From: Octopus sinensis
Taxonomy: Eukaryota
Length of the DNA stretch: 64,000 nt
Direction: 5' to 3'
Assembly: GCF_006345805.1 (NCBI RefSeq)
Contig: NC_043020.1
Span: 28,520,001 to 28,584,000, forward strand
Shown here: positions 14,889 to 57,668 of the stretch, piece after piece
Position numbering within the stretch: the stretch's first letter is position 1
How the letters are laid out: every line of letters begins with the position of its first letter
The notes under the pieces: model-generated
The model's input: only the letters and a program-made list of their open reading frames with translations
Databases searched by the model: none
Told to the model about the DNA's origin: nothing
Program-made: the position numbers and the translations under genes

Positions 14889-15821
14889 TCAGGATTGGTT
14901 GGACGATAAGGTATAAAGTGGGAACGTCTCTCCAGAAGAAGCTACTAAACTGACTGGATAGGGCGAAGCCCCTGTGGTGGCACAAGTAGAAATACTTTCC
15001 ATTGGGGTCAACTCTATGCCTGATTCACATTTACTGGGTGTCATATAAGTTCTTGTAACCTTACTTGAAATGTGCCCTTGAGATGATCGTCTATGGGGTT
15101 CCGAGTTGGAACTGTCGTCCGTGTAACCTTTGCCACTCTGATTGATATTGGGTTTGCATTGTTTGATGTCCTCTTGCGAGAGATTGTAGTCTGTGACATC
15201 ATCGTCTAAGATCTCAATTGGTTCAGTCTTGATGCCGCATTCAGAAGGAATGCCACTGACCGAACTGCTACCTTGTAGTGACATGGAAGAGGCTTGGGAA
15301 GTGGAAGGAAACTGATTTTGGTGAGAAGTTAAATAATTATGCTGCTCGTTAAGAGACTGAAGCCTCTCGTCGAGCAGCGAATTATGAACATCTTCCAGGT
15401 GAGAATGCGACAATCCAACGTTCTGTTCTTGGTTGTCAAAAGTTACATCAGCAGGATTGGAATCGTCGCTCAATGTCAACACCACTGTTTGACGATTGCT
15501 CTGTGACTTGGGAAGAGAATCTCGGTGACGGGGCGTCAACGTTGACGGGGAGCTGGTCATTTGCTTGTGTTCGTTTAGACTGGCAGCAAACTCTCGGCAG
15601 TGTTTCTGAATTTTATCGACTTTTAAGAGATTAGATATTCGTTCGACATCCTTGTACAGATGTTCGTTAAGGTTAAGGACACCGTCGTAGAGAAAGCTGA
15701 CAAAGATTTTCAGTCCGTCTTCGCTAATCCCTGGTGGAAGATTCACTTCCAAGTCAGCACCATCGGTAATATTTTTTTCCATCAAGTGAGGACTGGCAGC
15801 AAACAAAACCAAACGATGTAA
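14889..15821 (-). CDS. BTB/POZ protein constant exon C3 (BTB core plus low-complexity tail, stop)
   Basis: Acceptor ttcttttcCAG, phase 0. Reads LHRLVLFAASPHL...GISEDGLKIFVSFLYDGVLNL...VERISNLLKVDKIQKHC (BTB signature HR-VL-A-S, F++FLY-G, L+V--+---C), then an S/T-rich tail with a GIKTEP SUMO-type motif. TGA at 14891-14889. Confidence 0.88.
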   Translation of the reverse strand, partial: LHRLVLFAASPHLMEKNITDGADLEVNLPPGISEDGLKIFVSFLYDGVLNLNEHLYKDVERISNLLKVDKIQKHCREFAASLNEHKQMTSSPSTLTPRHRDSLPKSQSNRQTVVLTLSDDSNPADVTFDNQEQNVGLSHSHLEDVHNSLLDERLQSLNEQHNYLTSHQNQFPSTSQASSMSLQGSSSVSGIPSECGIKTEPIEILDDDVTDYNLSQEDIKQCKPNINQSGKGYTDDSSNSEPHRRSSQGHISSKVTRTYMTPSKCESGIELTPMESISTCATTGASPYPVSLVASSGETFPLYTLSSNQS

Positions 15822-15886
15822 CTGGAAAAGAAATCAACAACACTCCGTAAGAAATACTGTAAGTAATTAGGCATCCAGATCTACAG

Positions 15887-16421
15887 CAGTGGGTCCCAAC
15901 TGGGGACCCATGGAAGATTTTGTTGATAAAATTTATGTGCAATAAACAAAATATGTTGATGTTTTAAAAAATACAATTTCTAATAATAATAATCATCATT
16001 TAACATCCGCTTTCCATGCTGACATGGGTTGGACAGTTTGACTGAGGACTGGCAAGCCAGAAGGCTGCACCAGGCTCCAATCTGATCTGGCAAGGTTTCT
16101 ACAGCTGGATACCCTTCCTAATGCCAGGGTACTTTTTACATGCCACATTTGAATGATGCTTTTTACATGCCACTGGCACCAACCATGTTCACATGGTGCA
16201 TTTTATGTGCCACCAACATGGGAACCAGGCCAGACAGACTTGCATCAACCACTCTCGAATGCTGCTATTTACATGCCACTGGCATGAGAGCTTGTCATAT
16301 TTAATTATAAAAATACAGTAAGATTTTTTTTTTATGTACATCGAATACGTATGGGGGGGGTCCAGTTGAGTAAAATACAAATCAGAGGGGTCGATAAGTG
16401 AAAAATGGTTGGGAACCACTG
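15887..16421. mobile_element. hAT/Charlie-type MITE with a nested SINE, in the C2-C3 intron
   Basis: TIRs CAGTGGGTCCCAAC (15887-15900) and GTTGGGAACCACTG (16408-16421). The 8-bp flanks atctacag and ttctatag match at 6/8. Confidence 0.7.
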
Positions 16422-16595
16422 TTCTATAGCATTTGAAATATAATAGTAAAGCAAAGCAGAGACCCCTGAAATAATGAGTATGACCATATGGACATGGTTT
16501 CCAAGACATTTTTTTTTTTACAAACAATAACAAAATTAAATTTCAGATAATCTTTAAAAGCAGAAAAATAATCAAATAAATAAAAATATTCTTAC

Positions 16596-16746
16596 AGTCA
16601 CATTTTTGTTTCCACTACAAATTTTAGCATCACATAAACGCCGCTTCCTCCATAAACTTGCCAACGATTTCATCATCCCATCTGCATGTTCTGGATCGAC
16701 ATAGGTTTTCTTGAAGACGGTTGCAGGGCGGGAAGAAGCGGAAAAG
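16596..16746 (-). CDS. BTB protein constant exon C2 (BTB N-terminal part)
   Basis: Acceptor tatttaacAG (phase 2), donor ACT|GTAAGA (phase 0). Reads FSASSRPATVFKKTYVDPEHADGMMKSLASLWRKRRLCDAKICSGNKNVT (Y-D--H----L--L-----LCD BTB start). In frame with C3. Confidence 0.88.
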
Positions 16747-17009
16747 CTGTTAAATACAAATGAGAGATTAACATGAATATCATTGTCTATGTTTTCATCA
16801 ACTCACACACACAGATCTATATGTTAGTCACTGATTGTCCGTTTGTCTGTCCTTGTTTGTCCCCTCTGTGTTTAACCCCTTGTGGGTAGTAAAGAAATAT
16901 ATATGTTAGTCACTGATTTTACCTGTACTGCAATGAATGCATACTTAATGAACTTGGCAATTTTGCTGCAAGTGGAACACTCAAAGATTTGGAAGAGCAA
17001 TACTTTGCA

Positions 17010-17949: not shown

Positions 17950-18095
17950 CTTACAGACAAATCTTTTTCCTGATTTATTCTTATCTTGGAATTTTGGATT
18001 GTGTGCACTGGTTCTGGTTCATAAGTCTCAACTTCAGGCTGACCAATAATAGCGCCAGTGGCTGCTGCTACAGCGGACTGAACCTCCATTGCCTC
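17950..18095 (-). CDS. BTB protein constant exon C1 (146 nt; phase-0 acceptor, phase-2 donor)
   Basis: Acceptor gtttgtttaatttacAG|GAG, donor GTAAG|GTAAGA. Open frame EAMEVQSAVAAATGAIIGQPEVETYEPEPVHTIQNSKIRINQEKDLSV-S joins C2 in frame (AG+C = Ser). Confidence 0.8.
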
Positions 18096-27211: not shown

Positions 27212-28519
27212 CTGTCGGTTCAGAGCAATTTCACTCAAATTAGGCAGGTGGGGGAAAGTATTGTCAGTATCGGTCTGTACCATTGACACACGCAGGCCAG
27301 ACGGGTGTGGGCTGTAATTCATAGAACCCGCATTCGTATCGTGGGTCGCCTGCATTTCGTGGGACGACAGGGTGTTTAGGCCAGATATCGAACTGATACC
27401 GGGCAAAGCGAGCGACTGAGATGGGGTCGTCAAAGAGCTGCTGGTACCTTGTTGGGGGTCGAACTGAAATGCATCGAACACCTGAAAGAGGACGAACTTG
27501 GCTGTTGCACGGATGCAGTGGTTTGTGTAGACCCGGGAGAGTTTGGCCGTAAGCGCTATCCTTTTCATCATCGTGGACAAAGCTTCTTTTCCGAGTGGAG
27601 ATGCATTATACCAGATGGAGTCCTGGAAGGATGTGGTCCGAGGATGCTGGAACAGAGCTAACTCGTGCGGGTTTCGCTTCCGCAGGTAGCGCTCGAACGT
27701 GGCCACTGGACACACGGCATTACCTGTAGCATACATCCTCGCACTGCGACTGGAGTCTGGGGACAACGGGGAGCTGTTCGATTCGATGCTACATCCGTTG
27801 GTGTACTGAGACAGCGATTTCCGTTTGTAGACGTATTTTCGACCATATTCATCGGTACCAAAGCCAAAATGGTGAGGGGTGAGATAGCGCTGGTTCTCCT
27901 GTCCCCGACGAAAGAAATAAAATGTAATTTCAAACCAGACCTTGTTGAGGAGGCCTTCTGGTGTGTTGGGGTTAAACACCTGACTGTGGGAATAGAGAGT
28001 AGCCATGTCAGCCTGGCTGATCGGCTCTTTGTGTTCGATCGACCCTTTGCCAGCTTCTTTCAGTCGCTTCAAAGCCACTTTAAACGACATGTTCGATTTA
28101 CGGAATGCCGGGTCGTTCACGATGTTCACAGTTTTCAGGTAACGGTTCAGTCCATGGCGAAGTGCAACCAACGAGGAAAAACTATAGAACTGGCCGCCTT
28201 GTGTACGGACATTGATGTAGAAATCAGAGAGCAGTTCATCCAACTCACTCTTGGCCATATCTTCAATGGCAGTATTGATACCACGGCTATGGCAGAAGTC
28301 ACGGAATATTTTCGCGCTGTACTTGGTGGCTTCTTTGGTTTTTTTGCTGTCATACTGATGGGGTTCTTTCGATGGTGGAGGCATGACCAATAGAGGGACA
28401 TCTTCGTGAATAACTCCAGCCGATTGTAAAGGAATGTTAGTGCTAGCAAGCAGAGAGTTTGCAGTAGAAGTGCACGGCGGAGGAGTCGGCGACGACGAGT
28501 CTAGTGGATTGGAAGCCAT
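27212..28519 (-). CDS. Variable first exon V1: Crypton-derived tyrosine-recombinase-like (DUF3504) domain, 436 aa, predicted catalytically dead
   Basis: ATG at 28519, uninterrupted ORF with KTKEATKYSAKIFRDF, GLNRYL, WFEITFYFFRRGQENQR, CPVATFERYL, PLGKEALSTMMK and VYTNHCIRAT. No GH...Y box follows. Donor CAG|GTAAGT after 27212 (phase 0). Confidence 0.82.
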
Positions 28520-28640
28520 TAGTAACCTTCTTCCGCACGGCACTACGTTCTAGTAGCGTGACGTCACGGCAACATAGATGCGTAGTGAGCACTACGAGAA
28601 GACATAGTGCCCCAACACTATAGAAGCCAAATAAATATTA
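28520..28640 (-). promoter_or_regulatory. Candidate promoter/5'UTR of V1 with CRE palindrome
   Basis: GTGACGTCAC at 28558-28567, locally CpG-rich, repeated ACTACG/CGTAGT. No polypyrimidine-AG acceptor just before the ATG. Confidence 0.45.
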
Positions 28641-29149
28641 CAGATTTATATAAAAGTTGCACGGATTTTTTCCCTCCTTGTAAATTTTTCGCACGGCTAT
28701 ATATTTCCGGGAATACTCTGCTTATACGTTGTTGAAAGAAAGCAAAGAAGCAAATTAATAGTCGATAGCACCTCTCCCACTATCTCTCTCAGTCTATCAT
28801 ACACATCACTATATCCTTATATGTTGCTGACCGCTTCACTCACAAAAGAAAAAAAATATATAAGATTAGTCCGCCGTGACGATAGAATGGCGGCCCAACT
28901 ACAGACAATAACACAAGTCAGCTTAGTTAGTTAACTAATTAAATGTTGAGGAAGACGAAACGAAGAGGGGGGTGCGTGGATAGAAATACGTATTCCTTCA
29001 GAAGTAGGGTATATATATATATTTACGGAAAATAACTGTGTTATCATAGATTGGCGATGTAGCCCAAAAACATGAAGAAATAGTAATTATTAAATGACCA
29101 TTTCAATATAATTTTACTAATTATAATTAAGCTGGTGTGGGTATATAAT

Positions 29150-29361
29150 ATATATGTAGGAAAAAGAGATAGACAGATATATGTATAAATGTGTGTGTGT
29201 GTGTGTATACATATCTATCTATACATCTATATCTCTATATATATGCATATCTATATATATATATATGCATATCTATATATATATCTATATCTATATATAT
29301 ATATATATATATATCATATCTATATATATTCTATATATATATATATATATATATATGCATA

Positions 29362-29404
<43 letters not shown>

Positions 29405-29909
29405 ATCTATATCTATAATATATATATATATCTATATATCTATATATATATATATATCTATCTATATCTATATATATATATATATCTATATCTATATAAT
29501 ATCTATATATATATATATTATCTATATCTATATAGGCATATCTATATATATATATGCATATCTATATATATATAATATGCATATCTATATATATATATAT
29601 ATGCATATCTATATATATCTATATATATATATATATGCATATCTATATATATATATATATTATAATATATCTATATATATATATATATATATATGTATAT
29701 CTATAAAATATGCATATCTATAATATATATATATATGGCCTATCTATATATATATATATATATTATATCTATATATATATATATATATATATGCATATTC
29801 TATATATATATCTATATATATATCTATATATATATCTATATATATGCATATCTATATATATATCTATATATATGCATATCTATATATATATATGCATATC
29901 TATATAACA

Positions 29910-29955
<46 letters not shown>

Positions 29956-30150
29956 TATCTATATATATATCTATATATATATATATAATATATATATATA
30001 TATTATATATGCATATCTATATATATATCTATATATATATATATTATATATATATATCTCATATCTATATATATATCTATATATATATATATCTATATAT
30101 ATATATATGCATATCTATATATATATCTATATATATATATATCTATATCT

Positions 30151-30186
<36 letters not shown>

Positions 30187-30695
30187 ATATCATATATATG
30201 CATATCTATATATATATATCTATTATATATATATAATATATATTATATCATACTATATTATATATATATATATATATATGCATATCTATATATATATATA
30301 TATATATATATATGCATATCTATATATATATATATGCATATCTATATATATATATATTATGCATATCTATATATATATATAATAATGCATCTATATATAT
30401 ATATATATATGCATATCTATATATATTATCATATGCATATCTATATATATATATATATATATATATGCATATCTATATATATATATATATATATATATGC
30501 ATATCTATATATATATATAATATATATATAATATATATATATATATCTATCTATAATATATAATATATATATATATGCATATCTATATATATATATATAC
30601 TATATGCAATATCTATATATATATATATATATGCATATCTATATATATATATATTATATATATGCATATCTATATATAGATATATATATATATGC

Positions 30696-30737
<42 letters not shown>

Positions 30738-31971
30738 TATCTATATATATATATATATATATCAATATCTATATATATAATATATATATAAGCATATCTA
30801 TAATATATATTATATATAGAATATATGCATATCTATATATTATTATATATATATATATGCATATCTATCTATATATATATATATATAATGCATATCTATA
30901 TATATATATATATATGCATATCTATATATATATATGCATATCTATATATATATATATATATATGCATATCTATATATATAATGCTATATCTATATATATA
31001 TATATATATGCATATCATATATATAGATATATATATATATATGCATATCTATATATATATATATCCTAGCAGTATCACCCGGCGTTGCTCGGGTTTGTAA
31101 GGGAAATAACTATAAAGCATTTTTAGAGAGTTATAGCCAAAAAATAGCAAAAAAATGGGAAAAAAATGATGGTAAATTTTTTGAGAATTAAAAAGGTCGA
31201 GTTGCGTCCCTAGAGAGTCTGTGGTTTGTGTTTCTGATTCTCGACCCCACGTCGAATTTATCAATTTTTTTTTGCAGAACTGGAGGAACTTTTCAAGATT
31301 TTTCGCTGCGTTAGTTTTGAATTATGACATTGGCTATGTGTGTATCAAGTTTCATCAGATCGGTTGAAAGCCGTGGTCAGGGTGAGGGTACAACCTAACA
31401 GACACCCAGACACACACCACAGACAAACTGCGTTTTTATAGAGAGAGATATATATATATGCATATCTATATATATATATATATGCATATCTCATCTATAT
31501 ATATATAATATATGCATATCTATATATATATATATGCAATATACAAATATAATATAAATATATATATATATATATATATTATATACAATATAAATATAAA
31601 TATATATATATATATACATATATATACAAATATAAATATAAATATATATATATATTATATATATATATATATACAAATATAAATATAAATAGATATATAA
31701 TATATATATATATATATACAAATATAATATAAATATTATATATATATATATTATATACAAATATAAATATAAATATATATATATATACATATATATACAA
31801 ATATAATATAAATATATATATATATATATACACAATATAAATAAAATATATATTAATATATATACAAATATAAATATAAAATAATAGATATATATATATA
31901 TATACAAATATAATATATATAATATATATATATATACAAATATAAATATATATATATATATATATATACAA

Positions 31972-32011
<40 letters not shown>

Positions 32012-32170
32012 TATATATACAAATATAAATATATATCTTATATATTATATATACAAAATAAATATATATATTATATATAATATATACAAATATAAATATA
32101 TATATATATATATATATATCCAAATATAATATATATATATATATATATAATATCACAAATATAAATAAAA

Positions 32171-32210
<40 letters not shown>

Positions 32211-32468
32211 ATCTAATAAAACTGTATATATATATATATATAATATATATCTATATATATATATGCATATCTATATATATATATATATATATGCATATCT
32301 ATATTATATAATAATATATATGCATATCTATATATATATATATATATGCATATCTATATATAATATGTATATCTATATATATATATGTATGCATATCTAT
32401 ATATATATATGTATGTAAATCTATATATATATATGTATGCATTCTATATAATATATATATATATATAT

Positions 32469-32499
<31 letters not shown>

Positions 32500-32865
32500 C
32501 TATATATATATATTATATATATCTATACACATATATATCTATATCTATACACACACACACATATATATATACACACATATATATAAATACACACACACAC
32601 AAATATATATATGTTTATGTATGCGTATGTATATATAAATGCACAGGCATACGTACGGCTCTGTGTGTGTGTGTGTGTGTGCATATATAGACAGATTACT
32701 ATTGCCTCTATATTGTGTGCGCGCGCGATTGTGTATATCACTATAGGGAAATGGTTAATTGGGACTTCGAAGCTTCGGCTTACTCATCAGATTGTCAGCC
32801 ACAACTTCGAAGTTACTCTCAACATTTTCCTTCCTGAAATTAAAATTATATATATCTATATATAT

Positions 32866-32910
<45 letters not shown>
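29150..32910. repeat. ~3.7-kb AT satellite, (AT)n-GCATATCT units, with a variant (AT)n-ACAAATATAAAT block at ~31540-32215
   Basis: Direct inspection; interrupted by a Helitron-like insert at 31066-31448. Confidence 0.9.
31066..31448 (-). mobile_element. Non-autonomous Helitron-like element
   Basis: On - it starts TCTCTCT..ATAAAA and ends with the hairpin CCCGAGCAACGCCGGG followed by ...CTAG. Same family at 49411-49698 (+) and 61761-62140 (-). Confidence 0.65.
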
Positions 32911-33163
32911 CTTTATTTTTGTTTCAATCATTTGGCTGCGGCCATGCTGGAGCACCGCCTTTAGTCGGACAAATCGACCCCGGGACTGACTTATCCTTTG
33001 TAAGCCTAGTACTTAATGTACTGTCCTGTTTTGCCGAACTGCTAGGTTACGAGGACGTAAACACACCAACAGCGGTTGTCAAGCAGTGGTGGGGAACAAG
33101 CACAAAGACAAAACCCCCCACACAACCCATACCAGCATGGACAAAAGTCGTTAAATGATGATG

Positions 33164-33204
<41 letters not shown>

Positions 33205-34146
33205 TGTGTGTGTATTTTTTGGTATCTGGCTACCAAATCCACTCGGTTTTGGACACCCAGAAGCTATAACTGGAGACACTTGGTGAAGGTGCCACCCTGT
33301 GGGACTGAACTCAGAACCATGTGGTCAAGAAATATATATAAATTTAATACAAATGTATATATTATATATATATATATATATATTATATATACATACAAAT
33401 ATACCTATATGCATATACATATATATACATATCCATATATATACATATATATACACACACACACATATATATATATACACATATATATACATATATAAAC
33501 ACATACACACGTGGTGGGTGCTGAATAAATACTGGTTCTGGGTAAAATTTAGGAGGGTCAATTAATAAGGTTGGGCCTCCAACAAGACACCCTGAAAGCC
33601 AGGAACTTTTCAATGTCCCCCCCATATGTGTGTGTGTGTGAAAGTGCATGGTGCAGTCAGGCCCCTGTGCTCATGATCACCAGACTGTAGTTTCAATTCC
33701 CAAACCGAGCGGCATCATGTCCTTCAGCAAGGTGTTTCATTTTATGTCACTTTCACTGGGTGTAGATTAACCTTGTGATGGCCTGGAACTGCATTCAAAG
33801 GTATTGCAATCCCAGGTGCAAAAATGTCATTGAAATCAAGACAGACTCTAGCCTATAGGCTGGAAAGATACACACATAGATATATATGTATATGCCTCGT
33901 GTGGCACCTGTGCAGGTGGCACATAAAAAGCACCCACTACACTCACGGAGTGGTTGGCGTTAGGAAGGGCATCCAGCTGTAGAAACACTGCCAGATCAGA
34001 CTGGGCCTGGCGCAGCCTACTGGCTTCCCAGACCCCAGTTGAACCATCCAACCCATGCTAGAATGGAAAACGATGATGATGATATATATATATGAAAAAA
34101 CAAGTAAAAAATAGAAAATGCTAAAATAATTTTATAGTGAACATTT

Positions 34147-38160: not shown

Positions 38161-38844
38161 GGTACCCAGTATTTTGACTGCCAGTCAATTTCACCCCCCG
38201 ATGTTAGGAAAAAATAAAACGTTGAATAAAGAGATACAATAAAAAGCCAAATCGACTGAGCGATTGGAGGGTCACTTACTTTTGCTTGACGCCAGTTCCT
38301 GATATTGCGACTTACATGCGAAGAGGGAGGCATGAGAGCCATTTCCTTGTCATCAAGCTTTTCACGAATGGTCGCAATTAACGAACGGGAAGATTCCTGG
38401 GAAGCAGCTGCTTGGGCCTTCAGGTCCGCCAAAGTTTTGCGAACTTTGGGCACGGAAGCACACGAACTATGAAGATGTTCACCAACGCGCTTCACTATGG
38501 TATAATCTTCGTCGTGTGTCATGGTGTGGACTCGGGCTTTACAGGACCTAATTTCGCATTTCCAGTAAGTCTTAGATCCATCGGAATTTTTTTTCTGTGT
38601 TTCATATATGTAATTCATGTTATCCACAAGTTTCTTCCCTCCGCGGATGCTGTTAAATACGTGAGGCATGGTGCGTGTGTATTTTCTCTTTAAGTAACGG
38701 ATGAGGCAAGAACGGATCCCGGATAAACCTATAAACTCATGTTTTTTTTTTTTCTAATATCAGGAGTGAAATTACCGGAAGTGAAACTGACTGGCAGTCA
38801 AATTACCGGAGTCAAAATACCGGAAGTAAAATTACCTAGAATCC
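38161..38844 (-). mobile_element. Internally deleted Mutator-like (MULE) element carrying a FLYWCH ORF
   Basis: Imperfect TIRs (cagtattttgactgccagtcaatttcac versus gtgaaactgactggcagtcaaattaccg), subterminal tandem repeats at 38761-38840, and flanks tcgaaaat (38153-38160) / tcgaaaac (38845-38852) as a 7/8 TSD. Confidence 0.75.
38280..38669 (-). CDS. Candidate variable first exon V2: FLYWCH domain (MULE transposase N-terminus), 130 aa
   Basis: ACCATG start; GGKKLVDNMNYIY...KTYWKCEIRSCKARVHT...GEHLH. Donor AAA|GTAAGT after 38280 (phase 0). Confidence 0.55.
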
Positions 38845-40740: not shown

Positions 40741-41522
40741 ACACATGGTAAAGGGGTTGGTGTTAGGAAGGGCACCCAGCCGTAGAAACCACGTCAAAAT
40801 AGACATGGAACCAGAACAGTATTTCAGCTGGCCAGCTTCAGTCACGCAATCCAGCCCATGCCATCACGGAAAACAGATATTAGATGATGTATACAATAGT
40901 TGTAACTGTAGTATCATGCATAAATCTGTAAAACAAAAACAATCTCAAAACCAATTTCATTCATTTACAATGGTTACTGGTTCAATCCCACCGGTTGACA
41001 CCTTGGGTAAATAAATATCTTCCACTATAGTTCTAGGGCAACCAATGCATTATGGAGGAAACTATGTAGAAGCCTGTTGTACATCCTCATCATCATTTAA
41101 CATTCATTTCCCATACTGGCATGGGTTGAATCGCTTGGCAGGAACAGGCAAGACAGAGGACTGCACCAAGATCTACTGTCTGCTGTTGCATGGTTTCTAC
41201 AGTTGGATAGCTTTTTTAGCGCCAACTACTTTCCAGAGTGTAGTGGATGTTTTTTACAAGGCACCAGCAAGGTCACCAAGTAACTTGCAATACAAAGATC
41301 CCAAAATACCTGTTACATGGTAGCAGGGCATTCAAAAAATAGCAGCCAAATCTTTCCTTTTTCTGGGGAAGGGAGCCGTTTACACATGATTTCGATGTCA
41401 CATTTGTTGAAAGCATGCGAAATAACCTGGAAAAGAAAAAAATCCACGAAACAAAACACTGTTGCTGGGAAACTCCCAGTTTCCTGGTGACCCAATGGGT
41501 CACAGGTTGTCTAGTATGTATA

Positions 41523-41611
<89 letters not shown>

Positions 41612-41615
<4 letters not shown>

Positions 41616-42478
41616 TCAATCTAGCTAAAACTAAAGTCGTAATAAGTAGGAAGGTAGACAAATCACAAACGCCTTCAGGTAGATGGCCCTGCTCGATCTG
41701 TAGAAAAGGTGTAGGTAGAAACTCTATAAGATGCACCAAGTGTAAGCTATGGACACATAAGAGGTGCAGCAATGTCATAGGAAGGCTAACTAGGAAGATG
41801 GTTTTTGTATGTGGCAGATGCTCGGGAGCATTAACCTCTGAAAATCTGCAGAAAACAACTTCCGTCACTTTCCAGGGGGAAAAACTAGAAGTAGTTGATA
41901 GCTTCCATTATCTTGGTGACCAAGTCAGTAGTGGGGGGTGGGTGTGCTGAAAGTGTAACGGCTAGAGTAAGAATAGCCTGGGAAAAGTTTAGGGAGCTCT
42001 TACCTCTGTTGGTGACTAAAGGCCTCTCGCTCAGAGTAAAAGGCAGACTGTATGATGCATGTGTACGAACAGCCATGCTACATGGCAGTGAAACATGGGC
42101 CGTGACTGCTGAGGACATGCGTAAGCTCGCAAGAAATGAAGCTAGTATGCTCCGTTGGATGTGTAATGTCAGTGTTCATAGTCGACAGAGTGTAAGTACC
42201 TTGAGAGAAAAGTTGGACCTAAGAGGCATCAGATGTTGAGTGCAAGAGAGACGATTGCGCTGGTATGGTCATGTGGCGAGAATGGATGAAGATAGGTGTG
42301 TGAAAAAGTGCCACACCCTAGCAGTTGAGGGGACCTGTGGAAGAGGTAGACCCAGGAAAACCTGGGTCGAGGTGGTGAAGCACGACCTTCGAACTCTAGG
42401 TCTCACCAAGGAAATGACCAGAGACCGAGACCTATGGAAGTATGCTGTGCGTCAGAAGACCCGGCAAGACCAGTGAAA
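41612..42478 (+). mobile_element. 5'-truncated RTE-clade LINE (RT C-terminus with Cys-rich PHD-like insert), frameshift near 41940 and stop at 42237
   Basis: VNLAKTKV...CSICRKGVGRNSIRCTKCKLWTHKRC...LEVVDSFHYLG...MLHGSETW...QERRLRWYGHVARM...RGRPRKTW. Confidence 0.9.
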
Positions 42479-44284: not shown

Positions 44285-45786
44285 GGTACTTGTCTATTGT
44301 CGTGGTCCCGTTTTCGCACACGCGAATTCGCGCGCGCGCGCACGCCAGACTTGGGTACTCGATACTCGAGATCCTACGAGGTGACTTGCGCATGCGCAGT
44401 GCAGAATTCGCGCATGCGCGTTACCCCCCCCCCCCTAAAAAAAAGGTGTTGGATTTCACTAAAAATATATATATGTGTGTGTGTGTGTATATAACATTTT
44501 CAATTTTACACAAAAAAATTACATAGTCGCTTTCCTCGCGGATTTACAGATAAATGAATTAATTACTATTTTACAGAATAAAATTAATGAATTAATTATA
44601 TAAATTAAATAATTCTTGAAAATTAATTAATATTAACAATATTTTTTGAACAAAGTAAATAATTTATAAAACTTGGTTAATAATTTTTTTTACACAAACG
44701 CGAACGTATATAATTTGTGAAACTTTTTTTTTTTTTACAGACGTATATAATTTGGTAAACTTAATGAATTAATTTCTTCTCATCATCATCATCGTTTAAC
44801 GTCCGTTCTCCATGCCAGCATGGGTTGGACGGTTCGACCGGGGATCTGGGAAGCCAGAAGGCTGCACCAGACTCCAGTCTTATCTGGCAATGTTTCTACA
44901 GCTGGATGCCCTTCCTAACGCCAACCACTCCGAGAGTGTAGTGGGTGCTTTTTACATGCCACCCGCACAGGTGCCAGGAGAGGCTGGCAACGGCCACGGT
45001 CGGATTGGTGCCAGTCGAGGCGGCTCTGGCATCGGCCACGATTCGGATAGTGCTTTTTACGTACCACCAGTCCAGGGGTCCTGGCATTTGCCGGGTGCCA
45101 CACTTGCCCCAACATGTCTTCGCAAGCAAAGGGGGTTGGCGTGGGTGCCTGTCGTGGGATGAGGTTCGATATCAACTTCGCTTGCCTCAACAGGTCTTTG
45201 TGTATAAATGTATAAATTTTTCGCACTAAATTCTTTCCGTAGAATTTATCAAAAAACGCGCAAAATTATTCCGTAGAATTTATCAAATTAAAAAACGCAA
45301 AATTAATATATTTTTTGAAATTGCAAATTATTTAGAATATAAAACAAATGAAGTTAAATTTTTAAAATAAATGTCATATACTTATACTCTGTAAGGTGGT
45401 GTGTTCACACTTCAATTTACTATTTTCTAGAAATGTTGCTTTTCTAATTGAAACAATTTTTCTCAATCTCCATTTAAAAGTCCATAATGCCTCTTGAGCC
45501 ATATCAAAATGAACAACTTTGAATTACGCGGCGGTGGTGGTGGTGGTGGTGTGAGGTTCTAATTTTTTTTTCTGATCTCTCTTTGCCCCCTCTTTATCTC
45601 AGTTGTTCATTCCGCTAATATTTAGAAAAATTTTCGCGCCCAATTTTTGTTGTCGCGGGAAAAGATGAACGATTTAAAATAAATATATCTTAATTGTAGT
45701 GTGAGAAAGTATATATATTCTGATGACAAAATATATTATCTTTCAAAAACATCCCAAATTTATAGACTATATCGTGTAGGTTTAAG

Positions 45787-45832
<46 letters not shown>

Positions 45833-46805
45833 CTTAAACCTACACGATATAGTCTATAAATTCTACGGAAAGAATTTAGTGCGAAAAATTTATACATTTA
45901 TACACAAAGACCTGTTGAGGCAAGCGAAGTTGATATCGAACCTCATCCCACGACAGGCACCCACGCCAACCCCCTTTGCTTGCGAAGACATGTTGGGGCA
46001 AGTGTGGCACCCGGCAAATGCCAGGACCCCTGGACTGGTGGTACGTAAAAAGCACTATCCGAATCGTGGCCGATGCCAGAGCCGCCTCGACTGGCACCAA
46101 TCCGACCGTGGCCGTTGCCAGCCTCTCCTGGCACCTGTGCGGGTGGCATGTAAAAAGCACCCACTACACTCTCGGAGTGGTTGGCGTTAGGAAGGGCATC
46201 CAGCTGTAGAAACATTGCCAGATAAGACTGGAGTCTGGTGCAGCCTTCTGGCTTCCCAGATCCCCGGTCGAACCGTCCAACCCATGCTGGCATGGAGAAC
46301 GGACGTTAAACGATGATGATGATGAGAAGAAATTAATTCATTAAGTTTACCAAATTATATACGTCTGTAAAAAAAAAAAAGTTTCACAAATTATATACGT
46401 TCGCGTTTGTGTAAAAAAAATTATTAACCAAGTTTTATAAATTATTTACTTTGTTCAAAAAATATTGTTAATATTAATTAATTTTCAAGAATTATTTAAT
46501 TTATATAATTAATTCATTAATTTTATTCTGTAAAATAGTAATTAATTCATTTATCTGTAAATCCGCGAGGAAAGCGACTATGTAATTTTTTTGTGTAAAA
46601 TTGAAAATGTTATACACACACACACACATATATATTTTTAGTGAAATCCAACACCTTTTTTTTAGGGGGGGGGTAACGCGCATGCGCGAATTCTGCACTG
46701 CGCATGCGCAAGTCACCTCGTAGGATCTCGAGTACCTACGTCTGGCGTGCGCGCGCGCGCGAATTCGCGTGTGCGAAACCGGGACCACGACAATAGACAA
46801 GTACC
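44285..46805. repeat. Large inverted repeat (~960-bp arms) with an internal (TA)n-centred palindrome
   Basis: 44285-~45250 is the reverse complement of ~45858-46805, including a shared SINE; mirrored ORFs in the track confirm this. 45758-45863 is a perfect palindrome around (AT)n. Confidence 0.92.
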
Positions 46806-47292: not shown

Positions 47293-47853
47293 CTTCCCAT
47301 ACTTGATATCAGCGATAGTCGCGATTTGTTGACTGGCATCCCAGTTAATTCCAGGTAGGTAGGACGACGATTCATAAGCGGAGATTAAGTTAGCGGCAAC
47401 AACTTCTGTCTTGATGGCATGTTCCAACTGTAGAGATGTGCTGCTAGTAAGGGCACTTTGCTGGTCATCTTGGAATTTTAACGGAAGCCCGTCAATGTTC
47501 GGGGCTTTCAGTAAACGCCTCGCGGGTTTCGGTAATCTCTTCAAAGAACTCGCCGTCGACCTGTTACGTATGGAAGGCCGATCGTTGCTGTGATTGTGGT
47601 TCTCCCTAAACGATATTAGCTCTTGTTTGTTCGACATGACAGCGCTAGAGAGACAGCCCAGTGTTTTACACTTCCAGTAAATTCTGTCTTTGCGTTTATA
47701 GTTAAGACGAAACAGATAGCCATTTAAGGCCAAGAGTTGTCCGCCTCTCGTCGTCACGACCAGTTCGTACTCCGGCTGGCGCGGTTTGAATGTCTGCCTT
47801 TTTTTATTTAGTTTATAATCGTGGTTAACATTGAGAAACGAATCGTTCGCCAT
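47293..47853 (-). CDS. Variable exon V3: FLYWCH domain plus linker, 187 aa
   Basis: ATG at 47853; YELVVTTRGGQLLALNGYLF...RIYWKCKTLGC...RENHNH; AIKTEV SUMO-type motif. Donor AAG|GTATGT after 47293 (phase 0). No TIRs seen nearby. Confidence 0.78.
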
Positions 47854-50719: not shown

Positions 50720-52217
50720 TAGGTTGAAATCCCTTATCCGAAATTCCTAAAGATTTCGGAATATTTTTATACTTGCATCCATGAAATAGGACACCTTGGG
50801 GGATGGGACCCAAGTCTAAACACAATATCCACTTACATCTTATATTATATATATTTTTTTTTATTCTTTTGCTTGTTTCAGTCATATGACTGCAACCAGG
50901 ACTTTTTTTTTCAAACTCTAGTACTTATTCTATTGCTCTCCTTTGCCGAATTGCTAAGTTACGAGGATGTAAACACACCAGCACCGGTTGTCAAGCGGTG
51001 GTAGGGGACAAATACAAACACAATAACGTGCACACACACACACACACACACAATGAGCTTCTTTCAGTTTCCGTCTACCAAGTCCTCTCACAAGGCTTTG
51101 GTCGGCCCGAAGCTATAGTATAAGGTACTAGCCAAAGGTACCGCGCAGTGGGACTGAACCCGGAACCATGTGGTTGGGAAGTAGGCTTCTTACCACACCC
51201 CCACGCTTAACATTAGAACAGTAAGATATCCGCTTCGATGTCATGTTTTGATTAAAAGATTACACTACATGTACGCCATTTGTATTTCATTCTTTGCTCT
51301 ACGGATATTGGGTTTAATGTAAGATATAAACATTTTTAAAAAGCCAAAGCATTGAACATGATTACAGGTAAATAAAATGAAAACTGAAAAAGTCAACATA
51401 GCATTTTAAAAAAAAGTAATGTACAAATAACGATGTTAGTCATGTTATACTTATACACGGATGTGAAATTCGGGTCTAAAATAAGAATCACGTTTTGGGC
51501 TTACTGTTTTTAAAGATTTAATGCCGTGCCTTTTCCTAAATTTTTGCAACCAGTCTGCAGAATATTCACAGCTACCCTTAATTTTCAGTTTGTTATGATA
51601 GATTTTTGCCTGTTTCGTGATCAGCAATGCATTAAGCGGGATGTGTTTACTCTGGCACTGACGAATCCATTCCATTAGAACACGATCGTGATTTTCATTT
51701 TTCGCTCTATGTAATTTTTTCCTGTACTTCATCAAGCTTTGATCATCGCTTTCTTCATAGAACTGTCTTTTCAGGTCGTAAACAGTCGTTGTTCCGACAC
51801 CAAACTCCTCCGCCAGTTGCTTCACACTTACACCGCTCTCAAGTTTTTTCAACAACTTAACTTTCTGCATTATAGTTAGACATTGATGTTTTCTCTTTTC
51901 ACGATTACCCATGTGGGTATTTCCAGGCCTTTTCGACATTTCCGACATCTTCTTCTCGTCACAGGGCACAAAACAGGCGGCAATCACAAGTAACGAGCGA
52001 AGGTGTCACTCTGATGGCTGCTAACAAACTTCCAACTGAACTCTGGACGATAAAACTGCACCCAGGGTAGGTGAGGTCACATACGATAACGGCACACATC
52101 TGCACTTGGTGGAACTTTCTTAGCACTTTGTAGAATATTCTATTTGAGGTATGTCATGTTAGAATCCACAAAAAAACTTTCGGATTTGGGAATTTCGGAT
52201 ACAGGATTTTCAGCATG
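50720..52217 (-). mobile_element. Tigger/pogo (Tigger4/Zombi-like) element, internally deleted, with SINE insertions
   Basis: Ends taggttgaaatcccttatccgaaa (50720) and tttcggatacaggattttcagcatg|ta (52217); internal psq-HTH plus CENP-B HTH ORF. Confidence 0.75.
51505..51948 (-). CDS. Candidate variable first exon V4: HTH_psq plus CENP-B HTH, 148 aa
   Basis: MSEMSKRP...KRKHQCLTIMQKVKLL...GVGTTTVYDL...EYSADWLQKFRKRHGIK. Donor ACA|GTAAGC after 51505 (phase 0). DDD domain absent. Confidence 0.6.
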
Positions 52218-53759
52218 TATAGTCGATTAAATTGACCCCAGTAGTATGTAGTAGAATTTCAACGTCCACGATGCTTTCGCCGTGGGAGGTAGACAGTAAT
52301 ACCTTTATTTCTTGGATACTACAATAAATCAAACGAAATGTGTTGACATACAAGTTGTCTTGGTCTGTGATATAAATTACATTGTTAGAGAAGGGCTTAT
52401 AGAACTGAGTGCCCATAGTAACATCAACCATACAGTTACTAAGGCAGGTAAAGATGTGTGGAGATGTGAACTGTAATATATTCCACATCTCTATATTTCA
52501 GCCGCCTAAAATCTTCAACGTAACTTTCCAAGTTTTTCTCACGAACACAACTTCGGCAAGTTTTCAATTATTATAGAAGAAATACAAGTAAAGTTTGCTA
52601 TTTTATTTGAAGGTATTTTTTTAAAATGCAGTAAAAACTATCATCGCATCTCTTTCGATTAACTCCTCATTAACTCTCAGTCCAAGACAAAATAAAAGCT
52701 TGAAGGGTGACACAGGAGATTTTACTCTGAAATATATTTTAGCCGAGATGTGTGCCTTGTCGATGGAAGTTTGGGGCGAATAACGAACCATGTTAGAAAG
52801 AGAACATCTCAAATTTTTATAACTTTTTCCTTTTTACTAATTAACACCATGACTTTTATTTCACAACATAGCATAACTTAAGTGAAATACCTTTCTTACA
52901 ATGCTATAACCATGCAGCATTATAATTCGAATTATGTACATAACAATTTTATAACAGTCCCCAAAACTACCACAATATTAAATAATACCCTTTATCAATA
53001 CTTTAAATTTCAGCAGGCAACCATCTACCCTTTGCCATATAGACACTTTTTTTGTGTATTGTTACAATGCTCGCGTTCAACAGTGTTAAAAATAAAGTTA
53101 GTTTTACATTCGTTTAGCGTTGCAATGTCAGAATTATGTTAGAATCTATGTGCAATGGTGTTAAATATATAAAAAAAAAGACAATTACAGTTGTTTGTTA
53201 TTGTGATGCCCCTTACCAGATTAGAACCCACGATCAATGATGTTAAAGTTAAGATGCATCCGTTTATATCTACAGTACCCCTATATATATATATACACAC
53301 ACACACAATGAGCTTCTTTCAGTTTCCGTCTACCAAGTCCTCTCACAAGGCTTTGGTCGGCCCGAAGCTATAGTAGAAGGTACTAGCCAAAGGTACCGCG
53401 CAGTGGGACTGAACCCGGAACCATGTGGTTGGGAAGTAGGCTTCTTACCACACCCCCACGCTTAACATTAGAACAGTAAGATATCCGTTTCGATGTCATG
53501 TTTTGATTAAAAGATTACACTACATGTACGCCATTTGTATTTCATTCTTTGCTCTACGGATATTGGATTTAATGTAAGATATAAACATTTTTAAAAAGCC
53601 AAAGCATTGAACATGATTACAGGTAAATAAAATGAAAACTGAAAAAGTCAACATAGCATTTAAAAAAAAAGTAATGTACAAATAACGATGTTAGTCATGT
53701 TATACTTATACACGGATGTGAAATTCGGGTCTAAAATAAGAATCACATTTTGGGCTTAC

Positions 53760-54218
53760 TATTTTTAAAGATTTAATGCCGTGCCTTTTCCTAAATTTTT
53801 GCAACCAGCCTGCAGAATATTCACAGCTACCCTTAATTTTCAGTTTGTTATGATAGATTTTTGCCTGTTTCGTGATCAGCAATGCATTAAGCGGGATGTG
53901 TTTACTCTGGCACTGACGAATCCATTCCATTAGAACACGATCGTGATCTTCATTTTTCGTTCTATGTAATTTTTTCCTGTACTTCATCAAGCTTTGATCA
54001 TCGCTTTCTTCATAGAACTTCAACAGTTTGTCCTTTTGTTTCTTCAGGTCGTAGACAGTCGTTGTTCCGACACCAAACTCCTCGGTCAATTGCTTCACAC
54101 TTACACCGCTCTCAAGTTTTTTCAACAACTTAACTTTCTGCGTTATAGTTAGACATAGATGTTTTCTCTTTTTCCTTTCACGATTACCCATGTGGGTATT
54201 TCCAGGCCTTTTCGGCAT
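53760..54218 (-). CDS. Candidate variable first exon V5: HTH_psq plus CENP-B HTH, 153 aa (paralogue of V4)
   Basis: MPKRP...KKRKHLCLTITQKVKLL...YSAGWLQKFRKRHGIKSLKI. Donor ATA|GTAAGC after 53760 (phase 0). Confidence 0.62.
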
Positions 54219-56599
54219 TTCCGACAATATCTTCTTCACGCCACAGGGCACAAAACAGGCGGCAATCACAAGTAACGAGCGAAGGTGTCACTCTGATGGC
54301 TGCTAACAAACTGCCGTCAAACGGGCAACTGATGACGGGAAAACTGCGCCCGGGGTAAGTGATGTCACGTGCCATAACGGCACACAACATCTGCACTTGG
54401 TGGAATTTTCCTAGCACTCTGTAGAATATTCTATTTGAGGTATGTCTTGTTAACATTCACAAAAAAAACTTTCGGATTTGGGAATTTCGGATAAAGGATT
54501 TTCAGCATGTATAGTCGATTAAATCGACCCCAGTAGTATGTGACTGATACTCCCTAATCAAGGAAGATGAAAAGTAAAGGCACTTTCGGTAGAATATAAA
54601 TTTTTAAAGATACTTTTACTACAGCAATGTACTTCCGTCCGCCACTCTACCAATCCAAAAGTTAGGATTATTTCAGGTTGTTGGTAGAATGAAAAACAGA
54701 GTTTTTTCAAGAAAATGCAGTTTTATGAAAATGTTTGGCCCGAGGTTTGGAAAGTGAAAAAAAAAAATCGTGAACACTCGAGGTCGCTACAACAGCTAAA
54801 TTTCCCGTTACTGAGGATCTCTCTTAATAATCCCACATACTTAATACACCAAAGACTACAGAACAAAAAATATCCTTTCCCTTTAGGGCCCGAAAATACT
54901 CGAGTCCCCAACAACTAACTTTCTACGAGGCCCGTGTGAGATCCAGAATGAAGTACCGCATTAAAAAAAAAAGGCCACTCGACAAAACCTGATATGAATT
55001 CGCTCATCATCTCTCCAAACTTCGGTGTCAAAGCATGTTGCCTCCTCTCAGTCATTTCTACTATTAGAGAGGCTTCTGCTTCTTTGAGCAAGTTGGTTTT
55101 GTGCCACTTCTACTCCAACACCATAGATTCGTCCATTCTCCCTCACGCCACCGCAGGCCAGTACGATCTTAGGAACTTTATAGGGCCCGGGAAAATCAAT
55201 GCACAGCTGTGAGTACTGAGTGACAACATACAAGCGAGGTTTAAACTATTGGGGGATCGTAATAAAATCTAGATAACCACAAATTCAATAATTTTATCAA
55301 ACGCAAACAACTCATGAGACCTATACTTCAAAATGTTTCAGAATATACACGGTATTTTGTCCGCCGTTATGTTCTAAGTTCAAATTCCGCCGATGTCGAC
55401 TTTGCCTTTCATCCTTTCGGGGTCGATAAATTTAGTACCAGTTACGCACAAGGGTCGATGTAATCGACTTAATCCTTTTGTATGCTCTTATTTGTCCCCT
55501 CTATGTTTAGCTCCCTGTGGGCAATAAAGAAATAAATATATACACTTAACCTATTCGAATATATTCGGGATATTCGATTTAAATCCTAAACCAACATCAC
55601 CTCCATCTTCTCAAAAGACTGCAGACTCAGGAAACTCTCTCCTCCCTTTCTATGTTCCTACAATGCATTAACCTCCCAAATTTCAACGTCCACGATGCTT
55701 TCGCCGTGGGAGGTAGACAGTAATACCTTTATTTCTTGGATACTACAAATAAATCAAACGAAATGTGTTGACATACAAGTTGTCTTGGTCTGTGATATAA
55801 ATTACATTGTTAGAGAAGGGCTTATAGAACTGAGTGCCCATAGTAACATCAACCATACAGTTACTAAGGCAGGTAAAGATGTGTGGAGATGTGAACTGTA
55901 ATATATTCCACATCTCTATATTTCAGCCGCCTAAAATCTTCAATGTGACTTTCCAAGTTTTTCTTCGGCAAGTTTTCACTTATTATAGAAGAAATACAAG
56001 TAAAGTTTGCTATTTTATTTGAAGGTATTTTTTTAAATGCAGTAAAAACTATCATCGCATCTCTTTACATTAACAGTCTCAGGCCAAGACAAAATAAAAG
56101 CTTGAAATAAAAGATTTTACTCTGAAATATATTTTAGCCGAGATGTGTGCCTTGCCGATGGAAGTTTGGGGCGAATAACGAACCATGTTAGAAAGAGAAC
56201 ATCTCAAATTTTTATAACTTTTTCCTTTTTACTAATTAACACCATGACTTTTATTTCACCCCAATTATCATAGCATAACTTAAGTGAAATACCTTTCTTA
56301 CAATGCTATAACCATGCAGCATTATAATTCGAATTATGTACATAACAATTTTATAACAGTCCCCAAAACTACCACAATATTAAATAATACCCTTTATCAA
56401 TACTTTAAATTTCAGCAGGCAACCATCTACCCTCTGCCATATAGACACTTTTTTTGTGTATTGTTACAATGCTCGCGTTCAACAGTGTTAAAAATAAAGT
56501 TAGTTTTACATTCGTTTAGCGTTGCAATGTCAGAATTATGTTAGAATCTATGTGCAATGGTGTTAAATATATAAAAAAAAAGACAATTACAGTTGTTTG

Positions 56600-57040
56600 T
56601 TATTGTGATGCCCCTTACCAGATTAGAACCCACGATCAATGATGTTAAAGTTAAGATGCATCCGTTTATATCTACATACCCCTATTCATGTTAATCCATG
56701 TTTAATAGCGTTAAATAAGTTATATATATATTTGTTTAATGTTACACTGACCCCAGTCGGATTAGAACCGACGTTTAATGGTGTTAAATCTTTTTTTTTT
56801 AATGTAATATACATCTGGCTATCGTTTACAGTGTACCCCATTCGGGGTGGACCCCACGTTTAATAGCGTTAAATAAATAAAGTTATATATATTTGTTTAA
56901 TTATAGATTGACCCCAGTCGGATTAGAACCGACGTTTAATGGTGTTAAATTTTTTTTTAAATGTAATATACATCTGGTTATCGGTGCAATGTGCCCCATT
57001 CGGGGTGGGCCCCCACGTTTAATGGTGTTAAATAAAGAGC
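56600..57040 (-). repeat. Array of six ~78-bp degenerate units with tRNA T-arm-like hairpins
   Basis: Each unit on - reads tttaac(a/g)c(c/t)attaaacgt...gggg. Alternate units carry GTCGG-TTCTAAT-CCGAC. Confidence 0.65.
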
Positions 57041-57083
57041 AGAACGGAAAGAGAGTCCAGGGGAGACAAATATATAAACTTAC

Positions 57084-57668
57084 ATTTTCCATCACCAAGT
57101 CCTCACTTTTCAATATCCTCAACATAAACAGTTCCGACTGCGACTGGTCATTCTTGTCGTTCCATCGACCCGTCGCCGGATTTGCTGACTTCACTGGACT
57201 CTTGTTGAATCTGGCCTTACTACAATGGTTCTTGTAATTTCCATGTCTGCGACTACTGCACCTCGGACACAGAGAAATATAGATTTTTATGGCTTCGGCC
57301 GTCACATTGGCATATAATTGACGGGTGATGTTCTGCATTCTGTTGATACCAGCATGAGAATGTGTTAAGTGAACAGCTTTCAGGGCTCGGAATAAATCCT
57401 CGTCGGCGATGTAAGGACGAACGGATTCCGAGTCTCTTCGTCTTCTTCTCTTAATTAGTTTGGTTCCTTGATCATTGGTGACCAAATCAAAACGGCGAGT
57501 TACATTGTATTCTTCCCCAGTCCAAGCGGTTTTCTTGTCCCAAGCCCCTTTCAAAATGAGCAGGTATTTGTTGTATTGTTCCTTTGTCATGCTAACTACA
57601 TTTTTACCTATTTTCTCATTTTTCTTCACTCTCCACGTTCTCAAGAATTCTTCTTCGGACGTCAACAT
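57084..57668 (-). CDS. Variable first exon V6: integrase-type H2C2 zinc-binding domain (KRBA2/Ginger2-like N-terminus), 195 aa, no DDE core
   Basis: ATG at 57668; DEDLFRALKAVHLTHSHAGINRMQNITRQLYANVTAEAIKIYISLCPRC. Donor AAT|GTAAGT after 57084 (phase 0). Confidence 0.78.

Follow-up and report, generated by a model that had tools for sequence, protein, structure and literature searches.

Does a single octopus BTB gene take its DNA-binding front end from a row of unrelated, transposon-derived exons? This question is raised by LOC115223832 of Octopus sinensis, located in a stretch of 64,000 nucleotides (assembly GCF_006345805.1, contig NC_043020.1, positions 28,520,001 to 28,584,000; the window hereafter, in whose coordinates all exons are given) that carries three constant exons, C1 to C3, and upstream of them six open reading frames (ORFs), V1 to V6, all on the - strand. 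A preliminary description of the window had interpreted the six ORFs as variable first exons of one BTB module, and its structural particulars hold in the sequence: coordinates, ATG starts and phase-0 GT donors of V1 to V6 are as it had them, C1, C2 and C3 join into a frame of 409 amino acids (aa) behind a phase-0 acceptor, and the fusions of V1 to V6 with this frame again come to 845, 539, 596, 557, 562 and 604 aa. Its interpretation fared less evenly, as V1 is indeed spliced to C1, V2 and V3 are exons under selection and related genes set a precedent, but no junction of any of V2 to V6 with C1 was found. On balance, we consider it probable, though by no means assured, that at least some of V2 to V6 are alternative first coding exons of the BTB body.

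The constant part begins with C1 (17950..18095, -), whose phase-0 acceptor (TTTACAG|GAG) is conserved and is followed two codons later by an internal ATG (GCAATGG) at 18089, a caveat absent from the preliminary description. C2 (16596..16746, -; acceptor phase 2, donor phase 0) encodes the N-terminal part of the BTB domain (..SLASLWRKRRLCDAKICSGNKNVT) and shows 90-94% identity in Argonauta and in a cuttlefish-like contig, while C3 (14889..15821, -; 100% match to XP_029650369.1) supplies the remaining, C-terminal two thirds and a long tail of low complexity before the stop codon. The constant part matches Pfam BTB (5e-10), and its ratios of non-synonymous to synonymous substitution (dN/dS; Nei-Gojobori) relative to O. 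bimaculoides are 0.07 for C1 and 0.04 for C3, at a dS of ca. 0.23 for V1, V2, V3, and C3 and of 0.13 for the short C1. The gene order V3-V2-V1-C1-C2-C3 is maintained at the orthologous locus of O. bimaculoides, LOC106883396, and when Argonauta is compared with Octopus, unique sequence downstream of V3 is conserved solely at V1 plus its leader and at the three constant exons. Genome searches, which throughout this study covered the O. sinensis assembly (2.72 Gb, 13,516 contigs), also turned up two partial copies of exon C3 that are probably pseudogene fragments, one at contig C4:71185467-71186245 (47-71% identical, many stop codons) and one at contig C2:170873195-170873377 (90% identical over the last 61 aa).

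The isoform that starts with V1 is real, conserved across coleoids and already annotated. V1 (27212..28519, -; donor CAG|GTAAGT, phase 0) is a Crypton-derived first coding exon that matches Pfam DUF3504 (5e-11) and evolves at a dN/dS of 0.03 relative to O. bimaculoides, and its 845-aa fusion with C1, C2, and C3 is identical to XP_029650369.1, i.e., isoform X1 of LOC115223832, at 100% identity and coverage; it also matches CAI9739953.1 of O. vulgaris. The label X1 implies that the gene has one or more further isoforms. Orthologues are found in O. bimaculoides (XP_014789876.1; >90%, sharing the 90% cluster, with exon identities of 97-98%), Argonauta hians (GAB1609177.1; 87%) and Sepia pharaonis (CAE1277972.1, automatically labelled KCTD1_15), with those of decapodiforms being 75-79% identical and all of them carrying PF12012 and PF00651. 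The V1/C1 junction itself (...SEIALNRQ|EAMEVQSAV) is present in proteins from spliced transcript contigs (3.2-4.5 kb) of other cephalopods, one of them on 36 contigs, so that V1-to-C1 splicing is established by RefSeq identity, orthologues and transcript junctions alike.

Directly upstream of V1 lies a conserved block (28520..28911, -; 98% identical in O. bimaculoides, 85% in Argonauta and 76-78% in the cuttlefish-like contig) that is probably the V1 promoter or leader, judging from its sequence. The ca. 100 nt 5' of the V1 ATG hardly differ between Octopus, Argonauta and the cuttlefish-like contig, and the block holds a perfect cAMP response element (CRE) palindrome, TGACGTCA, at 28559-28566, three copies of CGTAGTG/CACTACG and a second conserved stretch at 28755-28876. 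A deeply conserved upstream block with a CRE was seen for V1 only among the cassettes. The leader also contains a YAG acceptor (CTATAG|TG, exon start at 28617), 98 nt upstream of the V1 ATG, that is conserved across cephalopods together with its pyrimidine tract and that becomes important below.

V2 (38280..38669, -; 130 aa, donor AAA|GTAAGT, phase 0) and V3 (47293..47853, -; 187 aa, donor AAG|GTATGT, phase 0) are FLYWCH cassettes (Pfam FLYWCH at 4e-8 and 5e-12, respectively), and their pattern of substitution marks them as functional coding exons under selection that end at the predicted donors. Relative to O. bimaculoides, where both donors are conserved, V2 shows a dN/dS of 0.18 and V3 one of 0.06, with non-synonymous changes in deficit at p=1e-5 and p=2e-11 (Nei-Gojobori). 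The per-exon dN/dS test that had been proposed for the array thus reveals purifying selection on V1, V2 and V3. The constraint ends at the donors: substitutions in V2 rise from 7.4% in the exon to 21.8% directly past the donor, no indel falls inside V2 as opposed to eight past its donor (seven of which are not multiples of 3), and V3 is likewise free of indels up to a donor that is followed by three frame-breaking ones within 240 nt. Argonauta has a V3 orthologue with 56% aa identity and a nearly identical FLYWCH core whose top-scoring donor, ACG|GTAGGT in phase 0, follows after 189 aa (187 in Octopus) and four codons before the stop; no counterpart of V2 was found in Argonauta, and no further copies of V3 were seen in the O. 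sinensis genome search. V2 and V3 are hence conserved coding exons that are absent from, or mis-modelled in, current annotations.

Two simpler readings of V2 and V3 fall with these data, as decaying transposon fragments are ruled out by dN/dS and indel pattern and stand-alone single-exon genes by the unconstrained tails past the donors. The latter idea might be extended to all of V2 to V6, which would then be independent genes ending at their own downstream stops with merely coincidental GT sites. Each ATG frame does run on for 17-66 codons past its GT before meeting a stop, and no junction of V2 to V6 with C1 was found; yet the tail of V2 combines 21.8% substitutions with many indels that are not multiples of 3, and that of V3 is frameshifted in O. 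bimaculoides and just 4 aa long in Argonauta, all of which contrasts with the low dN/dS and lack of indels in the exons proper. We regard this explanation as very improbable.

All six V exons end in phase 0, which is also the phase of the C1 acceptor, and together they form a tandem of ATG-initiated ORFs on the gene strand that encode nothing but DNA-binding domains. How far the donors themselves speak for splicing was assessed with a weight matrix that is blind to reading frame. The V1 donor (8.7) is the best on its strand of the window, the V3 donor (5.0) is the best in its region, the V2 donor reaches 3.8 (another GTAAGT in phase 0, 12 codons before it, reaches 4.6), and the V6 donor (3.8) is tied with a phase-1 site, followed by V4 (1.3) and V5 (0.8). 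The top donor near the cassette end is in phase 0 for V1, V2, V3, Argonauta V3 and a helix-turn-helix (HTH) cassette of the cuttlefish-like contig, and it is so in a tie for V6 and for an HTH cassette of Argonauta. With regard to the phase match to C1, the scan therefore supports V1, V2, and V3 strongly, V6 moderately and V4 and V5 weakly. RefSeq-confirmed donors of paralogous cassettes score down to 1.8-2.5 with the same matrix, so that the weak scores count against V4 and V5 without excluding them.

The three distal cassettes are of two kinds. V4 (51505..51948, -; 148 aa, weak donor ACA|GTAAGC, phase 0) and V5 (53760..54218, -; 153 aa, weak donor ATA|GTAAGC, phase 0) are HTH cassettes of the pogo/Tigger type that match Pfam CENP-B_N and HTH_Tnp_Tc5 (down to 1e-13). 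They form a recent tandem duplicate with a period of ca. 2.26 kb and 99-100% identical flanks and share 89% aa identity; they differ by three in-frame indels (3, 6, and 18 nt) and clustered substitutions, and V4 lacks 6 codons inside the CENP-B_N domain. V6 (57084..57668, -; 195 aa, donor AAT|GTAAGT, phase 0) resembles the N-terminal HHCC domain of integrases, though its match to Pfam Integrase_H2C2 is weak (1e-3, 19.6 bits versus a cut-off of 25.5), a search of the PDB with its sequence gave no match, and its single-sequence AlphaFold model is unusable (mean predicted local distance difference test score, pLDDT, of 32.7). Of the four transposon groups originally assigned to the cassettes, three thus stand on Pfam matches (DUF3504 for V1, FLYWCH for V2 and V3, pogo HTH for V4 and V5) while the "Ginger-type" integrase of V6 depends on a sub-threshold match. 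The claim that the cassettes all lack a catalytic end is borne out, since no DDE remnants exist anywhere in the window, including downstream of V4 and V5, and V6 contains no Pfam-detectable integrase core past its CxxC.

V4, V5, and/or V6 might accordingly be inert transposon relics or recent duplicates, with only V1 and perhaps V2 and V3 belonging to the gene. Besides the low donor scores of V4 and V5, their setting within a very recent local duplication, the codons missing from CENP-B_N in V4 and the poor Pfam match and structural model of V6, this explanation draws on the presence of other transposable element (TE) fragments in the interval (a GIY-YIG ORF at 34255-34896 and a PHD-finger ORF at 41426-41950). 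The reading frames, however, are intact in V4 to V6 without close young copies elsewhere, given that V6 is a single-copy sequence in the 2.7-Gb genome with an intact frame of 272 codons and no other genomic match, and that the nearest relatives of V4 and V5 are only 45-55% identical, the closest of them carrying stop codons. This suggests constraint on V4, V5, and V6, as far as can be told from sequence, and all three indels between V4 and V5 are in frame. Strand, own ATG, restriction to a DNA-binding domain and a phase-0 GT are moreover shared with RefSeq-validated paralogous cassettes whose donors are equally weak, and both Argonauta and the cuttlefish-like contig retain HTH cassettes 5' of V1. 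These lie 2.3-3.1 kb upstream of V1 and on its strand, each starting with an ATG, lacking a DDE domain and having its top donor in phase 0, but they are only 25-30% identical to V4 and V5 and to one another, making them positional analogues. Taken together, we think it quite unlikely that V4 to V6 are mere relics.

The strongest precedent for such an array comes from the same genome. ORFs encoding DUF3504 lie 14-48 kb upstream of related BTB exons, and on the same strand, on four contigs (C23, C16, C2, and C3), and the locus on contig C16 is the annotated gene LOC115220336 (LOC106879774 in O. bimaculoides) with RefSeq isoforms X1-X7. Isoforms X1 (911 aa) and X2 (897 aa) join two different DUF3504 exons, DUF3504-1 and DUF3504-2, to the same constant body, to which X3 (698 aa) and X4 (680 aa) attach FLYWCH-b and FLYWCH-a, respectively, by way of two small shared exons. 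All four first exons run from an ATG to a phase-0 donor (GTG|GTGAGT, CAG|GTAAGT, AAT|GTAGGT, and CCG|GTAAGC), and the FLYWCH exons are located upstream of both DUF3504 exons and spliced over them. When X2 was rebuilt from the genome by joining the best-scoring donor in phase 0 to the acceptor of the first constant exon, the result equalled RefSeq at 100% identity and coverage. Variable TE-derived first exons on one BTB body therefore exist in this genome and gene family; in other words, the architecture proposed for LOC115223832 is present in the same genome.

A paralogue on contig C3 extends this picture to other domain families. Its first exon encodes a pogo HTH and ends at a phase-0 donor (ACG|GTATGA) ca. 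180 kb upstream of the constant exons; the intervening sequence contains three ORFs for DUF3504 and a FLYWCH-like one. In annotated proteins, this constant region follows a pogo-HTH front end in XP_014782195.1 of O. bimaculoides (supplement of PMC10027918) and a THAP front end in GAB1599653.1 of Argonauta. Two more gene-strand ORFs at contig C3:139743339-139744454, between a DUF3504 ORF and the constant exons, may be further cassettes, one of them having a weak zf-C17orf113 match.

Elsewhere on contig C3, a cluster of at least five related BTB exons in tandem spans ca. 105 kb (141877933-141982622; 49-92% identical to XP_014774301.1) and includes a confirmed HTH first exon with a phase-1 donor (C|GTGAGT). 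An HTH-like ORF at 141960695 was rejected as a cassette because it runs into the start of a DDE domain and is an ordinary Tigger fragment. The closest BTB paralogue of LOC115223832 lies at contig C11:12850550-12853142, with 35-51% identity across exons C2 and C3. This paralogue has an Argonauta orthologue of 741 aa whose N-terminal region, beginning with MKFHVTLGYKKKVLD, has no Pfam domain; this region is also encoded ca. 12 kb upstream of the BTB exon on contig C11 and may be a front end not derived from a TE.

The model that we favour is of a cephalopod BTB gene family in which constant 3' exons would encode a linker, the BTB dimerisation domain and a tail, and in which each alternative 5' coding exon would comprise an ATG, a domesticated module of transposon origin and, at its end, a phase-0 donor. 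At LOC115223832, we infer V2 and V3, and probably V4/V5 and V6 as well, to be further exons of this kind. Their transcription would begin at individual starts or at a common one upstream, and splicing would bypass V1 to reach C1 in frame. Their products would be isoforms of 539-604 aa composed of a DNA-binding domain and the BTB body. Additional small linker exons might be included, as they are in the paralogue, though no counterparts of the paralogues' linker exons were found in the window. The variable module might then bind DNA, and the shared BTB domain could homo- or heterodimerise or recruit partners; the combinatorial DNA specificity suggested in the preliminary description is a speculative extension of this idea.

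Several observations weigh against this model. We searched a collection of 15 billion proteins (5.8 billion clusters) with the constant part and with the V1 fusion, in length windows of 225-716 aa and 465-1479 aa that exclude fragments of <225 aa, and found no fusion of any of V2 to V6 with C1; both queries returned V1 fusions and genomic calls of exon C3 alone. Exact look-ups of the V2, V3, V5, and V6 fusions, of the stand-alone ORFs and of a constant protein starting at its own methionine did not retrieve any V2-V6 product either. The same collection contains six isoforms of the paralogue, so this absence is meaningful, though short fragments or rare isoforms would escape. In O. bimaculoides, no gene is annotated at V2 or V3. 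V4 is present in O. vulgaris inside a 224-aa gene model that extends it into junk-like exons, the donors of V4 and V5 are weak, and the cuttlefish-like contig has a single HTH cassette within ca. 16 kb upstream of V1. Finally, the V2 donor is used in only one annotation, and there its partner is the V1 leader and not C1. The annotation in question is a 98-aa model of O. vulgaris, confirmed by exact look-up, that consists of M50-K130 of V2 spliced to the leader acceptor at 28617 plus 17 codons. The model is also evidence that the V2 donor is used, and it puts V2 and the V1 leader into one transcription unit. Its weight is imprecise because the O. vulgaris annotation pipeline mixes Iso-Seq and RNA-seq assemblies and proteins with ab initio predictions by Augustus and GeneMark (PMC10700109).

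An alternative explanation with some substance follows from this model, namely that the cassettes are spliced at their donors but into the V1 leader (28617) or into local exons without any BTB fusion. They could then give rise to short proteins with only a DNA-binding domain, e.g., competitors of full-length factors, or constitute long upstream ORFs or variant 5' leaders through which the translation or decay of the V1-BTB mRNA is controlled. Apart from the O. vulgaris model, this would fit the annotation of the Argonauta HTH cassette as a stand-alone product of 177 aa spliced to a nearby exon, the conservation of the leader acceptor and its pyrimidine tract across cephalopods and the lack of fusion proteins in the collections searched. 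But the leader route runs into a stop after 0-22 codons, and the tail that it adds differs among species and is not conserved as coding sequence (it measures 17 aa in Octopus and 22 aa in Argonauta, while the cuttlefish-like contig has a TGA at once). The stop of this route would precede several exon junctions, a position that normally triggers nonsense-mediated decay. The leader route would also leave unexplained why every cassette donor in three species is in phase 0, for which our arithmetic gives a chance of ca. 1/81 to 1/729; the models of O. vulgaris and Argonauta may in part be ab initio predictions; and RefSeq has paralogous cassettes, of both FLYWCH and HTH type, fused to BTB. Splicing without BTB fusion therefore seems rather unlikely to us, but less so than the other alternatives.

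We prefer splicing of the cassettes to C1 because the best or co-best terminal donors are in phase 0 in three species, for which the leader route has no need, because the C1 phase-0 acceptor is conserved with no other conserved exon-like block downstream, and because of the selection on V2 and V3 and the precedent of the sister loci. Selection on V2 and V3 acts at the protein level, which implies that a productive mRNA is needed.

Whether the same principle governs the whole gene family is a more tentative matter. It is conceivable, though we would sooner doubt than assume it at present, that coleoids have "socket" BTB genes (LOC115223832, LOC115220336, the loci on contig C3 and possibly those on contigs C23 and C2) that each possess an array of domesticated modules (DUF3504, FLYWCH, pogo HTH, THAP, and integrase HHCC) as alternative first coding exons. 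If so, each locus would make transcription or chromatin factors that share one dimerisation domain, and the window, whose six cassettes belong to four domain families of TE origin, would represent the most diverse array so far. Starting from HTH plus DUF3504, as in decapodiforms, the array would then have expanded to the six cassettes of Octopus. Within ca. 12 kb of the cuttlefish-like HTH cassette, neither FLYWCH-like nor V6-like cassettes were detected, and the 10 kb upstream of the window contain no long non-repetitive ORF that might be a further cassette.

The intervals between the exons contain various repeats and ordinary TE fragments. V1 and V2 are separated by, among others, a microsatellite tract of ca. 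4 kb (29100-33500; GC content down to 14%), and the V2-V1 interval is ca. 3.2 kb shorter in the O. vulgaris assembly. The GIY-YIG ORF mentioned above (+) is an ordinary TE fragment on the strand opposite to the array in which it lies, and the same holds for the PHD-finger ORF (+) and a subsequent 114-aa ORF without Pfam match (41895-42239, +). An inverted, near-identical pair of sequences resembling short interspersed elements (SINEs) at 44800-45265 and 45786-46305, between V3 and V2, gives rise to the same ORFs of 120 aa and ca. 116 aa on opposite strands. A second local duplication (52323-53166 versus 55748-56568; spacing ca. 3.4 kb) links the V5-V4 and V6-V5 intervals and is 96-100% identical, including 300 nt at 100%, suggesting a very recent rearrangement or an assembly artefact. 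Downstream of C3, a convergent RabGAP-TBC gene (window 1 to ca. 5800, +) is annotated in O. vulgaris and O. bimaculoides; the downstream gene of Argonauta is also convergent and has no Pfam match on record, so that the 3' neighbour is conserved at least within Octopus.

Among known systems, the paralogue LOC115220336 is the nearest, as it belongs to the same BTB family (ca. 30% identity in the BTB region) and has tandem, same-strand, TE-derived first exons in phase 0. It differs in that its alternative isoforms are annotated, whereas only that of V1 is at LOC115223832, and in that its FLYWCH isoforms use two small linker exons; LOC115223832 in turn adds pogo-HTH and integrase-like cassettes. 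We found no paper on this architecture, be it at either locus or for the annotated paralogue. In clustered protocadherin and UGT1A genes, tandem variable first exons that encode complete N-terminal modules are joined to one constant set. The layout proposed for the octopus gene is the same, but the exons of these clusters are paralogues born from tandem duplication and have proven promoters, while those of the octopus encode unrelated TE-derived domains and their promoters are putative.

The fly genes lola and mod(mdg4) have an N-terminal BTB domain and variable 3' exons that are partly joined by trans-splicing. One BTB module with a family of isoforms from a single locus would be common to them and the octopus gene. 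In Drosophila, a constant BTB is combined with numerous alternative exons for DNA binding or specificity, some of them encoding FLYWCH (PMC5666082). In the octopus, by comparison, C2 and C3 at the 3' end carry the BTB domain, and the variable exons, of four TE-derived domain families, lie 5'. The mirror-image likeness that had been proposed is one of predicted layout; an N-terminal BTB with variable 3' exons is not what the octopus gene has, and the fly genes are functional analogues only and not relatives.

Host-transposase fusions arise where exons for transposase DNA-binding domains are captured by alternative splicing onto host regulatory domains while the catalytic parts are lost (Cosby et al., bioRxiv 10.1101/2020.05.07.082677). 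TE-derived DNA-binding domains on separate exons, loss of the catalytic part and, for V1-V3, purifying selection are all found at the octopus locus. Such fusions are mostly single captures with a typically 3' transposase exon and a transposon-borne acceptor, unlike the several 5' exons with donors seen here. Vertebrate KCTD1 isoform b originated when a Crypton inserted upstream of a BTB gene and came to provide a single-exon N-terminal DUF3504 in front of the C-terminal BTB domain (Kojima and Jurka 2011, PMC3212892). As in the octopus, a DUF3504 exon on a BTB gene is used in an alternative transcript, but KCTD1 has a single TE-derived exon and is a KCTD-family gene while the octopus constant part matches only Pfam BTB/POZ PF00651. 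Orthology to KCTD1/15 was rejected given this sole Pfam match and given that the best representatives among 1.84 billion proteins are cephalopod paralogues and ZBTB-like proteins; by sequence, the DUF3504-BTB combination of the octopus looks like an independent origin rather than an orthologue. Vertebrate ZBTB11 has an N-terminal integrase-like HHCC zinc-binding domain followed by BTB (PMC12062965), which is the domain order of the predicted V6-C1 fusion; it also has C-terminal zinc fingers and is no product of alternative exons, so that its likeness to V6 is one of domain order. In Octopus more broadly, Mukherjee and Moroz noted that most CENPB and THAP factors carry BTB and read the BTB domain as transposon-derived (PMC10027918). 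If the cassettes of LOC115223832 do feed its BTB body, unrelated transposon DNA-binding modules would have been captured repeatedly as alternative first exons at one locus, a compact path to new transcription factor isoforms in a lineage whose genomes and transcriptomes are noted for unusual innovation. The gene would then mirror Drosophila lola and mod(mdg4) as a case of convergence and would extend the paradigm of KCTD1 isoform b and of host-transposase fusions to multiple captures.

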